From: Polymyxa betae A26-41 | Taxonomy: Eukaryota > Protista > Endomyxa: Phytomyxea | Direction: 5' to 3' | NCBI GenBank assembly: GCA_003693705.1 | Contig: RBZT01000705.1 | Coordinates: 79,356-143,355 of the forward strand | Length of the DNA stretch: 64,000 nt | Shown here: positions 57,840 to 63,649 of the stretch, in pieces | Numbering within the stretch: the stretch's first letter is position 1 | Layout of the letters: each line of letters opens with the position of its first letter | Program-made: the position numbers and the translations under genes | Notes under the pieces: model-generated | The model's database searches: none | What the model was told of the DNA's origin: nothing | What the model saw: only the letters and a program-made list of their open reading frames with translations

Positions 57840-58319
57840 TCAAGATAGAGGCTGTTCTAGAATATACCATTCCTTCATAGTAACTACGATGGCAGCTTTA
57901 ACGACACCACCATCTAGGTCTTCGGGCGGCGTCCAGGTGAAGACGGTATCCTTGGTTTTGGGGTTCTTATTCACCTGCGTGATGGTCGACCCGTCATTAC
58001 ATTCCTTATTAGAGACCGCTTTCAGATATTTGGCCGATTTCCACTCTCCGACCCGATTGCCATCGTCGCCTTCGACATAGAGCAAGAATCCTCGATAGTC
58101 GTCGCCGATCAGACGGATCTCATAGTCCTTCTGGCCGTCAGGTTTCTGTTGGACATCGATGGAAAAGGCGTTGCTGCTCGGGTCGCCATCTGGCTCCGAC
58201 ATTTTGCGAAGTTCGTCAGCAGTGGCATCACAGACCGGTGACCCATTCGGATGCGATTCGATAGCGATCCATTGCAGGCAGCTGACGGTAAAAAGAAGAA
58301 CGAGCCCATAGTTCATCAT
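57840..58319 (-). CDS. Secreted stand-alone Reeler-domain protein
   Basis: Signal peptide, then HPNGSPVC, YRGFLLYV, VGEW, C...TITQVNKNPK...FTWTPP (Reeler pattern); intronless. Confidence 0.8.
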   Translation of the reverse strand: MMNYGLVLLFTVSCLQWIAIESHPNGSPVCDATADELRKMSEPDGDPSSNAFSIDVQQKPDGQKDYEIRLIGDDYRGFLLYVEGDDGNRVGEWKSAKYLKAVSNKECNDGSTITQVNKNPKTKDTVFTWTPPEDLDGGVVKAAIVVTMKEWYILEQPLS

Positions 58320-58460
58320 AATGCTATAATAAAGATATGGTCGGCAATGGCGATCTGTGATCCATGGCTCATTGACTCATCCAGTGAATCACAACTCAGA
58401 AACGACTCAAGGCGGGTCCCAAAAAATCGTGAGGTCATCTGTTTTTTATTCGGAAACTAT

Positions 58461-58648
58461 CGAAAAGGTATAATAAAGGCGATGGGACCCTGCGCTCTTG
58501 TGAACGAAAAGGTATAATAAAGGCGATGGGACCCTGCGCTCTTGTGTAACGAAAATGTATAATAAAGGCGATGGGACCCTGCGCTCTTGTGTAACGAAAA
58601 TGTATAATAAAGGCGATGGGACCCTGCGCTCTTGTGTGAGCGGGTCCC
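58461..58648 (+). repeat. 44-45 bp tandem repeat x4 ending in a hairpin
   Basis: Unit cgaaaa(g/t)gtataataaaggcgatgggaccctgcgctcttgtg(t)aa at 58461, 58505, 58550, 58595; the last unit is followed by gagcgggtccc. Confidence 0.95.
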
Positions 58649-58820
58649 TGCTTGAACATGAGGTGACTGCATTATGCGCAGCCCGCTCTCATTTATTTTC
58701 ATAATCAGATTGCAATTGCTTTCTTGATCAGGTTGTCTCATGTCGTCCAGATAATTTTCAGTAGAGGCAACAAAGCGTTCAAATATCAATTGCTATAGCT
58801 TTGAATCTCGAATTTAAAAC

Positions 58821-61800
58821 ATGGCTGCCGATGGAGATGGGCAATGCCATAACGAACGATGCTGTGGGATAACCGATACCACAAACATTGATGATGGCGA
58901 TGACAGATTTGGCATCGCGACCCAAGACGTTCGACTATCAGTATTGAAAAAGCGGTGCGAATTGAATCTGATTGTCGACCAAGATTGGAGTTGAGTGTAT
59001 ATAGAACAGGGCATTATGGGATTCCAACCGGGAACAAATTTCAACATGTTGCAAGGGAAGGCGATCAACTCGACGTATGAGCCATGCTGGATTTGCAGAT
59101 AGGCAATTGAGTGATGATTTTAGCGATACGCCAGCGAGATCTGGATACAAATTTGGACATTTCAGATAGCTCGCCTCATTCAATGGTCGGAAAACACATT
59201 TACTCATCCTAGCTCGGAAACAAGCTAACCATGTAATAGGTGCCACGATCGCGACTCCACTTTCGTCTGCTTTATCGATCCATGGAGAATTTTGGCCGGT
59301 AATCTGTTCCCGGCCATACAACAATATATACAGCAAAACCTATACATGACGCCCGCTGTGATGTCGCTTTTCGCCTCGACAATGAACAAACTCATGAGCT
59401 GGGGAACCTGCCTCTTTGATACAGGTTCAAGCAATCATCTTGCCAAAATCATTTTCAATTCAATTTGTCAGTTTCCAGTCGGCCCTGGGCTTCACCAGAA
59501 CAGCTGATGGGCAGTACGGCCGCCACGAAACAATCGGATATGTGGATCTTTGGGTAATAAGTTGTGAGATCTCAATCTTCAACTCTAAATTTCTAGCTGA
59601 CAGATGTCTTCTATACGAGCTGTATGGTAATGGGACGCCATTTATGTCGACTGTTAACCGCCACCATCGTTATCCCAGACTGATTGAGATATTCTCGTAA
59701 AATCTTGTTATGCGAGTTTCTTCATCATGAACCAACTTCAGGGCGATCGGCTCTCCCCATCTGGACGTGTGGCCGGAAGCCGCTATGCTGCCGGGATTCT
59801 CCCGGCAGTTTCCCGGATGGCGCAGACGACGATTGGCGAATTTGAAGCATGGTGACGACCAGGCAGCAAACGACCTGATTAATGTCGGGCGATTGTTTTG
59901 TTCACAGAACCGATTGCTTTATTAAACCGCTGTCCAGAATCTCCTGGTGCTGGCGCCCAGTCACCGGCTCGATATCGACGACGTCCTTCGTCACGAATAT
60001 TTCCAAATGTTGTATCACGTCATCGGTAAGAAATCAATTCATGCTGCTTTGTCAGAGTGCATGACGCCTACTTATAGACGACATCTCGATCGAGGTCCCA
60101 ATCTCGTTTTCAGCGCCGTTCTTTCCGACCTACCAGCAAGTATGAAATCCAGCCTTGATATCGATTCCTAATAGTAGTGCTAGAGCAAATCGTTACCTCA
60201 AGCGGTAATCGACAGTCGACTGGTTAAACATCGTCGGGTATTACTCAATTGGATCAAGACCGTTGCCGAAGAGTGACGCTGCCGTCTTTCCTCTCGCTGT
60301 CTAGATTCTCACCACAGCCAGCAGGTTCAAAATCAATCCGTCGGCGTTCTTCATCTGTATGAAGTTGATCGACGAAATCCTGCTTCCAAACCGATCATCC
60401 CCAGACCATTTGCAGCTTTTAGCTGAAGTCTGTCTGTCGATCGCTGTGAAGCTCGCCGATCATGTTCAGGTTCGCGAAATCGTGCTGTGGAGTGGTCGTT
60501 GTCATTAACCACGCTCATCTCTCAACAATAGATCGATCTCTGGACCTGGACCTCTATGGCCTCGAATACGTTCTCAATTGAACAGTTCCGTTGCAGCGAA
60601 CGCGAGGTTCTACGTGCAATACGCTCTCGGTCACCATCGCTTATCACCTGCTTCCACGACCTTCAATTCTTCATACGTGTTCACGGCGATGTTTGCCCAG
60701 ATCAGGCCGATCTCGCCCAATTGATTCTAGGAAAGGCGCTCGTACGATTCGTTTTAGACATGAATATTGCAATTGTTGAGTGTTGACAGATCGAACACCC
60801 GGAGCTAAGTTGGGGCGGATCGAAAACGTTGGCATTATCAGCATTTTGTATAGCGCTCGGAGTGGATCGAAACAGCTGCTGGACGTCTCGCCTCGTCCCC
60901 TACATGCCAGAATCGATTACTCCGATCATAGCGCGTCTATACGGTTTATGCACATCTGCGGGCGACAAATTTCTGTCTGCCTCTTCTGTAAGCGTTTTGG
61001 ACTGTTTCCATTTGCCCGTTAATTTGGTTAGATTAGGCGCAGTCCGCTTTGGCAATATTTGCAGATGGAGACGTGGGCCGAGCAATGTTTCAACCGATAC
61101 GATCCCGCCTATAAACTTGATCGGGCCCTTTTGAAAAAATGTCTTCACTTTCTAGACGGCAACGATCTTTCCCGACTCAGCTGTTTGTCGAAATCCTGGA
61201 GGCAGGCCGCCCTGGATCGGTCGCTTTGGACCAATATCACCTTAAGTACGATACGTGCACATAAGCTGGGCGGTTCCCTGATTTCAGTTTGTTTGCAGTT
61301 GGAAGTAGATCTGCTGACGAGCTGCTGCTGCGTGTCTTGACGTATTGCTCATCGTTGCAATATTTGAATCTATCCGGTTCGCGGATCTCCTTGACAGGTC
61401 TCACGCAGGTGTTTATCCGATGCCCAGGATTACGGACCCTGATTATCGATCGAGCTCAATGCGAGAAAGGTCGGATTTGTTTTTGATGCATATTCACGGA
61501 GCCTGATTGTTCTGCATTCAGTTCGGGATTTTGATATCGCCACTTTTCCGGAACACGATGCTTTATTAAATCTGTCCGTTGCGTCTGCGAATATTTCCCT
61601 GGATGTCATGGCAGGGATATTGAAATCACTCCCGAACCTGGCCTCATTCAATTGCAGCAGTTCATTATGCTCTATCGCGCCAGCATTGTTCTATTTGCCC
61701 TCCAGTATTCGCCATCTCGATCTAAGTGGGAACGCCTGGGTCACCGATCAATTAATTTCAGGTCAGTAACATAATTGATTCGCGATCGCGATCTGAACGC

Positions 61801-62374
61801 AAACCCAGAAATAGCCGGCAAAGCTCAGTTAACGTCGTTGCATGTGAATTTCTGCCTGCATCTGTCTACCGACGGGATCGATTTGCTGATCAGTGATCGA
61901 CTGACCCGGTTAAGTATCTGCAATCAGAATACCGTCTCCGACAGATTTCTGATGACTATTACTCGGATATGCTCAGAGCTGCTGACGTTAGAGCTGGCCT
62001 TCAACATCTATTTAATGTCACACTCCGCTCTAGCATCCATTTCTCGTCTCAAAAGACTTCAGACACTCGGTACGTCCCGGGCGACTTTCATGGGGAATAC
62101 TTTGAGATCTCGTATAGTTCTTTGCAGGGTTCCGAGTGTATCCGATGAGACGATCTGTTCGATCGCCGAAGGCTGTGTTAACCTGCAGGTCGTGAATGTA
62201 CGAATGTGCCCGGATGTTGGTCTTGTGGGTCTATCAGCATTATATCAGCATTGCCGTTATCTGCGATTGATTCGTTGTCTGCGATGTCCTGCACATCTAC
62301 TGCGACTGTTCCAGGCCCGAAATGTCCAAATCGTCTGTCATTCCATAGATGATTCCTGGCAAACCATTTTGTGA
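58821..62374 (+). CDS. Fusion protein: CDK-like pseudokinase - cyclin N/C boxes - F-box - leucine-rich repeats (spliced)
   Basis: SPEQLMGS...SDMWIFGCLLYEL and IGSPHLDVWPEAAMLPGFSRQFPGW (CDK C-lobe); HRRVLLNWIKTVAEEF...LQLLAEVCLSIAVKL (cyclin box); LLKKCLHFLDGNDLSRLSCLSKSWRQAALDRSLWTNI (F-box); CSSLQYLNLSGS, CVNLQVVNVRMC (LRR); linked by in-frame 44-62 nt GT-AG introns. Confidence 0.8.
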
Positions 62375-62424
62375 CGGTTTCAATATTCGACGATCCCGGC
62401 GTACCATGTTTTAGTCGATGCAGA

Positions 62425-63649
62425 ATGCCAGCTGTTAAGAACCAGCAGGATCGCCCAGCTGACACGCCATTTCGTCAGCAGCGATTGCCGGCTTGGCAGC
62501 CAATTCTGACACCGAAATGGGTCATCATCACCTTTACATCGCTGGGCATTGTTTTCATCCCGATCGGGCTGATCGTCGTCTCGATCTCTAATTTGGTCGT
62601 CGAAGTTATTCAACGATATGACGATATCTGTCCGCCTCCGCCTTCCGAATGCACAATTAATGTCACAATTCCTTCTGATATGCAGCCGCCTGTTTACTTC
62701 TACTACCAGCTGACCAATTTCTACCAGAATCATCGGCGTTATGTGAAATCTAGTATGACACGTCTTTGAAACTAACAGAGTCATTCTTTTTAATTCATGT
62801 AGGAAGTGACGCTCAGCTGCGAGGAGTTGGCGATCTGTCTGAATCCGATCTGGCAAATTGCGATCCGATGATAATGTCGCCTGCTGACCCGACCAAGGTC
62901 CTGTATCCATGCGGGTTGATCGCCAACTCGTTCTTCACCGATCAGTTCAATGCTTCGCTCTACATCCCTGGATCTGTTAATGAGACCATCCTCTCCGGTG
63001 ATAACTGGAATAAGAATGGAATCGCTTGGTCCACCGATGTCCAACAGAAGTTCAAAAAACCAAGACGTAATTACGACGAAGTGACCAGGTGATTTTCGCT
63101 GCTTTCAGTTTCCGTATTGCTTTCGAGATCTCATTTCCGTATTGCTTTCGAGATCTCATTTTGTTTTCCAGATATACAACCAGGCCTGGAATCGGGACGA
63201 TTTTATTGCCTGAAGTTATCGATGAAGAATTAATCGTCTGGATGCGAACAGCGGGCATGCCAACTTTCAAAAAGCTGAATAGAATTATCGGCCAAACGAC
63301 GATTCCAGCCGGGACCGTCATTCAAGTGCGTATCAACAATCAATTTCCAGTCTCCGGGTTTGATGGGCAGAAAGCGATTGTGTTCTCGACGACTTCTGTC
63401 CTCGGAGGGAAGAACCCCTTTCTTGGATTCGCCTACATTAGCGTCGGGTCAATCTCACTAGTACTGGCTATGCTGTTCTTAGCGAAACATTACCATTCGC
63501 CGAGGACGCTGGGCGACATGACGTATTTCCACTGGAATCTATCCGATAAACGAGTTCATCCTGGTGATAATATCGGAACGCAATCGATGAGCCGTCCTGG
63601 CGAAGCTGCCGTCTCCGAAATAGACAAGAAATCTAATGATGACAAATAA
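62425..63649 (+). CDS. CDC50: CDC50/LEM3 family flippase beta subunit (spliced)
   Basis: FRQQRLPAWQPILTP; YYQLTNFYQNHRRYVKS; PCGLIANSFF; IVWMRTAGMPTFKKL; LGGKNPFLGFAY. Confidence 0.96.

Follow-up and report, generated by a model that had tools for sequence, protein, structure and literature searches.

A four-module locus in Polymyxa betae

Polymyxa betae is a plasmodiophorid (Rhizaria) and an obligate parasite of sugar-beet roots. In a 64,000-nucleotide stretch of its genome (contig RBZT01000705.1 of assembly GCA_003693705.1, positions 79,356 to 143,355; hereafter the window) we analysed the plus-strand gene at 58821-62374, for which an earlier note, made from the sequence alone, had proposed a single continuous spliced frame joining a cyclin-dependent kinase (CDK)-like domain, a cyclin, an F-box and leucine-rich repeats (LRRs). 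A kinase remnant, the cyclin, the F-box and the repeats are co-transcribed on contiguous spliced RNA. An open reading of 900 codons, from the ATG at 58821 to the TGA ending at 62374, does exist in a model of 18 exons and 17 GT..AG introns, 15 of which are supported by RNA while two (60140-60183 and 60988-61031) were taken from the earlier note; the RNA assemblies, however, break this frame on the way from kinase to cyclin.

The RNA evidence comes from two Logan contig sets, X2 and X3, which stem from different studies and are 100% identical to the window. Since these contigs skip introns, they represent RNA. The features of the gene are as follows, with lengths in nucleotides (nt).

58720..58820, plus strand: 5' leader; an X3 RNA contig starts at 58720, and a stop at 58815-58817 lies ahead of the first in-frame ATG
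58821-58954, 59005-59074, 59124-59185, 59240-59424, plus strand: exons 1-4 (residues 1-151); open frame, introns in RNA
59472-59553, 59604-59696, 59742-59883, 59938-60025, plus strand: CDK C-lobe remnant (residues ~151-286); Pfam, PDB and own-CDK matches, introns in RNA
60026..60077, plus strand: first linking intron, 52 nt, GT..AG; joint 60024 to 60077 (cut +1) in X2 and X3
60078..60139, plus strand: linker exon, 62 nt; no in-frame ATG; X3 piece 60077-60139 (63 letters)
60140..60183, plus strand: disputed second linking intron, 44 nt; the frame stays open
60184-60272, 60325-60469, 60532-60741, 60790-60987, plus strand: cyclin module (residues 307-520); Cyclin_N score, introns in RNA
60988..61031, plus strand: cyclin-to-F-box intron, 44 nt; donor used in X3, retained in X2
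61032-61245, plus strand: F-box exon (residues 521-592); internal ATG at 61065, F-box at 33.8 bits
61299-61469, 61522-61761, 61809-62069, 62118-62374, plus strand: FBXL-type cysteine-containing LRRs; TGA stop at 62372-62374, introns in RNA
62375..62427, plus strand: spacer to the CDC50 start codon, 53 nt; crossed by RNA contigs of both runs (pieces 61520-62753 and 62117-62753)

Transcription across the modules

GT..AG joints are present in RNA throughout the kinase part (58955-59004, 59075-59123, 59186-59239, 59425-59471, 59554-59603 and 59884-59937), and intron 59697-59741 was deduced from the X3 depth bins. Further downstream, five joints occur in both X2 and X3 (60026-60077, 60273-60324, 60742-60789, 61246-61298 and 61470-61521), a sixth, 60470-60531, in X2, and two more, 61762-61808 and 62070-62117, in X3 only. 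Five of the seven introns that the earlier note had predicted (60026-60077, 60273-60324, 60470-60531, 60742-60789 and 61246-61298) are thereby found in RNA to the base. The X3 contigs over 58720-61467 have near-equal depths of 7.0, 6.2, 6.9 and 6.5, and the contig that runs into CDC50 has a depth of 19, a pattern that fits one unit beside a more strongly expressed neighbour. We are confident that the gene is a single transcription unit spanning ~58720-62374.

The two assemblies differ in three downstream introns: X2 retains 60988-61031, 61762-61808 and 62070-62117, of which the last two are spliced in X3. This may be a case of stage-specific intron retention. The RNA contigs that lead from the last LRR exon into CDC50 reflect either overlapping transcripts or read-through between tightly packed genes. 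An operon resolved by spliced-leader trans-splicing was considered and set aside, as no loose leader-like ends occur at 61065 or 62425. Two further RNA runs filed as the same species contributed 0 raw reads; they probably derive from uninfected host plants and hence provide no test.

The four modules

Family and homology searches were made one exon at a time, with exon-sized queries. In the kinase part the outcome differs between its two halves. Exons 1-4 match no Pfam family, Pkinase included, and the first 150 residues bear no significant likeness to the CDK of P. betae itself in a shuffle test (p 0.18-0.99 for the expected pairings). Relics of a glycine loop, a cyclin-binding helix and a catalytic loop had been seen by eye in this region and were dropped, the shuffle test against the organism's own CDK being unsupportive. 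Neither a DFG nor an HRDLKxxN motif can be read anywhere in the 900-residue model. The exons that follow are of a different nature. On exon 59420-59554 the Pkinase family of Pfam matches with an E-value of 0.034, spanning the APE motif to subdomain IX, and the PDB matches of the same exon are of MAPK/CDK type. Exon 59743-59883 is matched by residues 219-262 of human CDK1 in the PDB at an E-value of 1e-3, with CDK3 and CDK2 next. The last exon of the canonical CDK of P. betae (contig C912) aligns across an intron with 59767-60021 at an E-value of 1e-8, and this alignment reaches to within a few residues of that CDK's end. C-lobe sequence of CDK type is therefore present and a complete catalytic domain is not, so that the 'CDK-like domain' of the earlier note shrinks to its C-lobe. 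As judged from its sequence, the kinase module is a predicted catalytically dead CDK remnant of which the C-lobe alone is recognisable. As the first 150 residues do not significantly resemble the CDK of P. betae, one would not expect the cyclin to be contacted in the canonical way, via an N-lobe helix.

The cyclin module holds up in its first half. Exon 60326-60469 by itself scores 26.9 bits with Cyclin_N, above the Pfam cut-off of 23, and 31.3 bits in a genome scan, and exon 60184-60272 clearly codes for the first cyclin helix, its motif being common to four paralogous cyclin loci of the P. betae genome; the cyclin N box recognised at the outset is thus borne out. A second cyclin fold was sought in exons 60532-60741 and 60790-60987, exon by exon, and neither gave a Pfam or PDB match, so the 'cyclin C-like box' that had been placed there is not confirmed.

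Downstream of the cyclin module the assignments are firm. Exon 61032-61244 scores 33.8 bits with the F-box family PF00646, against a cut-off of 20.5, and its PDB matches are GID2 and FBXL2. The repeats that follow are of FBXL type: the PDB matches of exon 62120-62371 are FBXL2 (6o60_C, 8.2e-8), FBXL17 (1.6e-7) and COI1 (1.2e-5), and Pfam LRR matches on 61301-61483 and 61524-61766 are weak. The F-box and, their putative AMN1 type aside, the LRRs had been named correctly from the sequence, and the two hallmarks of the FBXL class, an F-box above the curated score and LRRs C-terminal to it, are present together.

The junctions between modules

The kinase-to-cyclin junction decides whether the kinase remnant can be part of the same protein as the cyclin box. 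The first linking intron, 60026-60077, is spliced in both assemblies. The second had been placed at 60140-60183, and in this form it is found in neither. Its donor at 60140 is used in X3, since the piece after joint 60024 to 60077 measures 63 letters. As regards the acceptor, X3 bin 60151-60291 has a value of 4.32, and 4.32 x 141 gives 609 depth units, which at the contig depth of 6.22 correspond to 98 letters; with a 44-nt intron, 89 letters would be expected and the bin would stand at 3.93. Applied to the neighbouring X3 bins, this calculation recovers every one of them to within one base. Because the bin holds 98 letters, the exon should start at 60175 and the intron should be the 35-nt alternative 60140-60174, an acceptor choice that we regard as very probable for X3. 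It leaves nine extra bases in the frame, TAG TGC TAG, and the kinase frame then ends after 306 residues.

X2 departs from the predicted intron in another way. A 3185-nt contig joins 60127 to 60195 and so skips the 67 nt 60128-60194; the skip has CT..AC ends and a 4-nt microhomology, and no GT..AG placement is possible for it. The kinase frame stops at ~60225 in this form, after 312 residues, and no contig beyond this one is needed to explain the X2 depth bins. The skip may reflect a jump of the reverse transcriptase, antisense splicing or a deletion in the strain. On the minus strand, 60128-60194 has the make-up of a proper GT..AG intron: its donor reads GTAACG, and TTCAT, a branch-like site, precedes the AG by ~12 nt; the contig with the CT..AC skip carries plus-strand spliced introns on both sides.

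The sequence around the two candidate acceptors is compatible with either being used. A CTAAT branch-like site lies 3 nt before the AG at 60174 and 12 nt before the AG at 60183; the 3-nt spacing matches that of CTGAC and TTGAC in two RNA-confirmed introns of the gene, and the 12-nt spacing is the commoner. Once intron 60026-60077 and donor 60140 are fixed, no acceptor other than 60183 leaves the frame open. In the frame of the cyclin no ATG lies between M280 (60007-60009), a codon of the kinase frame within the last CDK exon, and M348 (60359), which falls inside the cyclin box; starting at M348 would remove the first cyclin helix. Translation of an intact cyclin box is thus feasible only if the kinase frame is read on through the 44-nt splice.

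At the cyclin-to-F-box junction, too, the two assemblies differ. With 60988-61031 retained, as in X2, the cyclin frame stops at 61129-61131, and the ATG at 61065 could open the F-box frame. In X3 the donor is used: a piece of contig record 6 ends at 60987, and the last 58 letters of the record fall within 60997-61137, where they match the bin value of 5.06 exactly and leave no loose end. Contigs built from 31-letter words should share at most 30 letters; since record 7 starts at 61090, this limit places the X3 acceptor at or before 61061 (61031, 61036 or 61042). Acceptors 61064 and 61070 were rejected, as either would give records 6 and 7 an overlap above this limit. Of the remaining candidates 61031 is the only one in frame, and it is the first AG after a TTAAT branch-like site. 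The intron 60988-61031 of the earlier note is thus probable in X3 but not proven at its acceptor, and X2 retains it.

Comparison with known systems

The architecture had been described as unrecognised, and this holds for one part of it. In limited literature searches we found no description of a cyclin box, with or without a CDK remnant, upstream of an FBXL module; the order kinase-then-cyclin with a dead kinase, by contrast, is known. Judelson and Ah-Fong reported four Phytophthora CDKs with C-terminal Cyclin_N/Cyclin_C regions, confirmed by reverse transcription PCR (RT-PCR), whose kinases are predicted to be dead, with relatives in other oomycetes, Paramecium, Tetrahymena and Theileria (PMC3019232). 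These CDK-cyclin fusions, for example PITG_21617, come from the same supergroup as Polymyxa, SAR (Stramenopiles, Alveolata and Rhizaria), and share with the gene both the order of kinase and cyclin and a predicted inactive kinase. They differ in that they retain a full kinase domain with one Asp-to-Asn change, in subdomain VIb, whereas in Polymyxa the C-lobe alone is recognisable, and in that their junction is confirmed by RT-PCR, whereas the assembled junction forms of Polymyxa break the frame. No F-box or LRR is reported for the PITG_21617-type proteins, which were compared with the Polymyxa gene by description.

A second point of reference is animal cyclin F (CCNF/FBXO1), a substrate receptor of Skp1-cullin-F-box (SCF) ubiquitin ligases, in which an F-box and a cyclin box are likewise united. 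Its cyclin box is reported to serve in substrate recruitment and not in CDK activation (PMC12232547). There the F-box is N-terminal to the cyclin box and LRRs are missing, an order that the Polymyxa gene does not follow; in Polymyxa the series is cyclin, F-box and LRRs, with the CDK remnant possibly at the front. Since no sequence kinship with cyclin F is detectable beyond the domain families, the joining of cyclin and F-box in Polymyxa looks, at the level of sequence, like an independent invention. FBXL proteins (FBXL2, FBXL17, Skp2 and plant COI1/TIR1) have the same succession of an F-box and cysteine-containing LRRs, but in the known ones neither a cyclin box nor a kinase remnant precedes the F-box. 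The gene is thus not a categorically new device, as the kinase-cyclin, F-box-cyclin and FBXL pairings are each known.

Relatives and surroundings of the gene

Relatives of the gene were sought along several routes. A protein word search with the LRR frame 61775-62371 returned nothing, an exhaustive search with exon 60532-60741 among 1.84 billion representatives gave no matches other than spurious ones to repeat proteins of bacteria, and a metagenome scan contained no orthologue. Close paralogues of the kinase, cyclin or LRR exons are likewise missing from the P. betae genome, for which reason we reject the idea that the gene was recently pieced together from other genes of this genome.

The gene is flanked on one side by a divergent small Reeler-domain gene (57840-58319, minus strand) and on the other by CDC50, whose start codon lies 53 nt past the stop, and the local order in the window is PEX7, Reeler, four-module gene, CDC50. 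This order is not kept in a Plasmodiophora-like relative (GC content 0.62; Logan SRR20204233-36, ~7670-9835 in L009): a CBM_21 gene stands upstream of CDC50 there, and within 10 kb of CDC50 the contigs of this relative have no match to the exons of the four-module gene. A transcript-like Logan contig of 1420 nt (ERR2109475) encodes a CDC50 that is 80% identical to that of the window, the corresponding values being 71% for Spongospora and 61% for the Plasmodiophora-like genome; it may come from a closer unsampled relative. A search for synteny via the Reeler gene led to nothing but a contig of contaminating P. betae DNA among beet sequences. This contig, AYZY01067879.1 (1020 nt) of the sugar-beet genome assembly GCA_000510975.1, is P. 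betae DNA, 99.8% identical to window positions 57916-58935, and thus represents parasite contamination of the host assembly and, at the same time, a second P. betae isolate. The divergent promoter between the Reeler gene and the four-module gene contains a 45-bp tandem array (58458-58640). An X2 contig over the array has a backward joint from 58637 to 58600 with 7 extra letters, so the array is transcribed, with a copy number or phase unlike the assembly.

A proposed splice-site switch and its alternatives

How can a gene whose modules share one RNA yield frames that stop ahead of the cyclin box? We tentatively favour, with slightly more doubt than belief, a single 18-exon transcription unit with a splice-site switch at the kinase/cyclin boundary. 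Use of acceptor 60174, or the non-canonical 67-nt skip of X2, would end translation after 306-312 residues and give a short CDK-remnant protein, and these short-product forms would be the ones assembled from public RNA. Use of acceptor 60183, nine bases downstream, would carry the frame into a divergent cyclin box, the F-box and ~ten FBXL-type repeats, for a product of 900 residues. Because an intact cyclin box needs the 44-nt splice and the assemblies show frame-breaking forms, a tandem-acceptor switch with the short form dominant in both assemblies is the simplest reconciliation of the two. A transcript that starts at the upstream promoter and undergoes the 44-nt splice encodes the four-module protein. 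The two halves of the frame are stop-free over 306 and 594 codons, as would hardly be expected of sequence that is not translated, and as both stay open, selection on each half is argued for.

Our confidence is not the same for all parts of this proposal. That cyclin, F-box and repeats belong to one protein is likely; that this protein also carries the CDK remnant at a meaningful level is at best evenly balanced. The long product would act as an SCF substrate receptor in which the F-box would bind Skp1, and targets would be held by the repeats together with the cyclin box, in the manner of cyclin F; the catalytically dead kinase remnant would serve as a scaffold or regulatory appendage only. 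Of the SCF receptor with its own tethered cyclin-CDK module that the earlier note envisaged, the cyclin/F-box/LRR receptor is a reasonable prediction, but a CDK-containing polypeptide hinges on intron 60140-60183. In its fullest form the proposal is of a self-contained SCF receptor, with F-box and FBXL repeats preceded by a tethered cyclin box and a dead CDK remnant, whose level relative to the short CDK-remnant protein would be set by a 'poison' tandem acceptor, 60174 versus 60183, with two in-frame TAGs in 9 nt. It would be a splicing-controlled rhizarian counterpart of cyclin F, independently invented and built on a SAR CDK-cyclin fusion. We consider this possible, though on the whole doubtful.

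Several observations weigh against the splice-site switch and the long product. The in-frame junction 60139 to 60184 was seen in neither X2 nor X3. The single polypeptide thus lacks proof at the junction that matters most, and the RNA forms that dominate the two assemblies contradict it. As assembled contigs retain only the dominant path, X2 and X3 do not give isoform ratios. The acceptor 60174 of X3 comes from depth arithmetic and not from a directly read joint, and part of the X2 RNA may be unprocessed, given its three retained downstream introns. The 900-codon frame by itself is not beyond chance. Among GT..AG combinations with introns of 35-90 nt, 42 of 475 give a stop-free passage from the kinase frame to that of the cyclin, and 22 of 53 do so between the cyclin and F-box frames; in-frame paths are thus frequent here by chance, and the continuous frame alone proves little. 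Finally, the single-exon searches found no orthologue by which conservation of the fusion could be judged, although such a blank is not proof of absence.

The best-surviving alternative, which we nevertheless think unlikely, invokes two adjacent or overlapping genes, co-transcribed or joined by read-through: a CDK remnant that ends at 60175-60227, and a cyclin/F-box/LRR protein translated separately, with no kinase fusion. Both assembled RNAs do stop the kinase frame ahead of the cyclin, and the CDK homology ends at 60021, at about the end of the organism's own CDK, in keeping with a tandem pair of genes in an ancestor. Genes that are clearly distinct are also spanned by RNA contigs elsewhere in this genome, for example at the passage from the LRR gene to CDC50. 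The second gene would have to start from an internal transcript beginning at ~59940-60000 via M280, from M348 or from a non-AUG codon. However, M280 is in the kinase frame, so that an upstream-initiated transcript with the 44-nt splice would make the fusion anyway, and M348 would come at the cost of the first cyclin helix. No cluster of RNA starts or ends is reported between the modules either, though contigs cannot show one.

A second alternative is that normal mRNA uses both 60140-60183 and 60988-61031, that the main product is the 900-residue four-module protein, and that the deviating forms are minor, unprocessed or artefacts of library preparation or assembly. The continuous frame, the cyclin box without a start of its own and the uniform X3 depth agree with it. 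The X2 joint, too, is non-canonical and has the 4-nt microhomology to be expected of a reverse-transcriptase jump, X2 retains three introns, and the RT-PCR-proven oomycete CDK-cyclin fusions offer a precedent (PMC3019232). Nonetheless, a frame-breaking form was assembled in each of two independent studies and the in-frame form in neither, and the X2 bins leave no room for a second isoform contig; for these reasons we hold it to be clearly unlikely.

That the cyclin/F-box/LRR part is an untranslated, decaying relic within a long 3' region of the CDK-remnant mRNA is improbable: the lack of homologues of exon 60532-60741 among the 1.84 billion representatives and of a paralogue in the genome, together with the frame-breaking and intron-retaining RNA forms, would suit a relic, but 594 codons over nine exons are open with all splice sites intact (chance ~4e-13 at a stop frequency of 3/64 per codon), the F-box and FBXL repeats still score well, and at least six introns of this part are spliced.

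Implications for the cell cycle of plasmodiophorids

What are the consequences of one outcome or the other? Should the products be no more than the short form and a separate receptor, the locus would be of modest interest, as an example of how easily in-frame 'fusions' are read into compact small-intron genomes. If the 900-residue form does exist as a protein, a cyclin box and an F-box would have been united a second time, independently of animal cyclin F. The range of fusions between a dead CDK and a cyclin, known from oomycetes, ciliates and Theileria, would then reach into Rhizaria, with a ubiquitin-ligase module added. Moreover, the long form would offer a handle on cell-cycle proteolysis in plasmodiophorids, uncultivable root parasites with almost no functional cell-cycle data.

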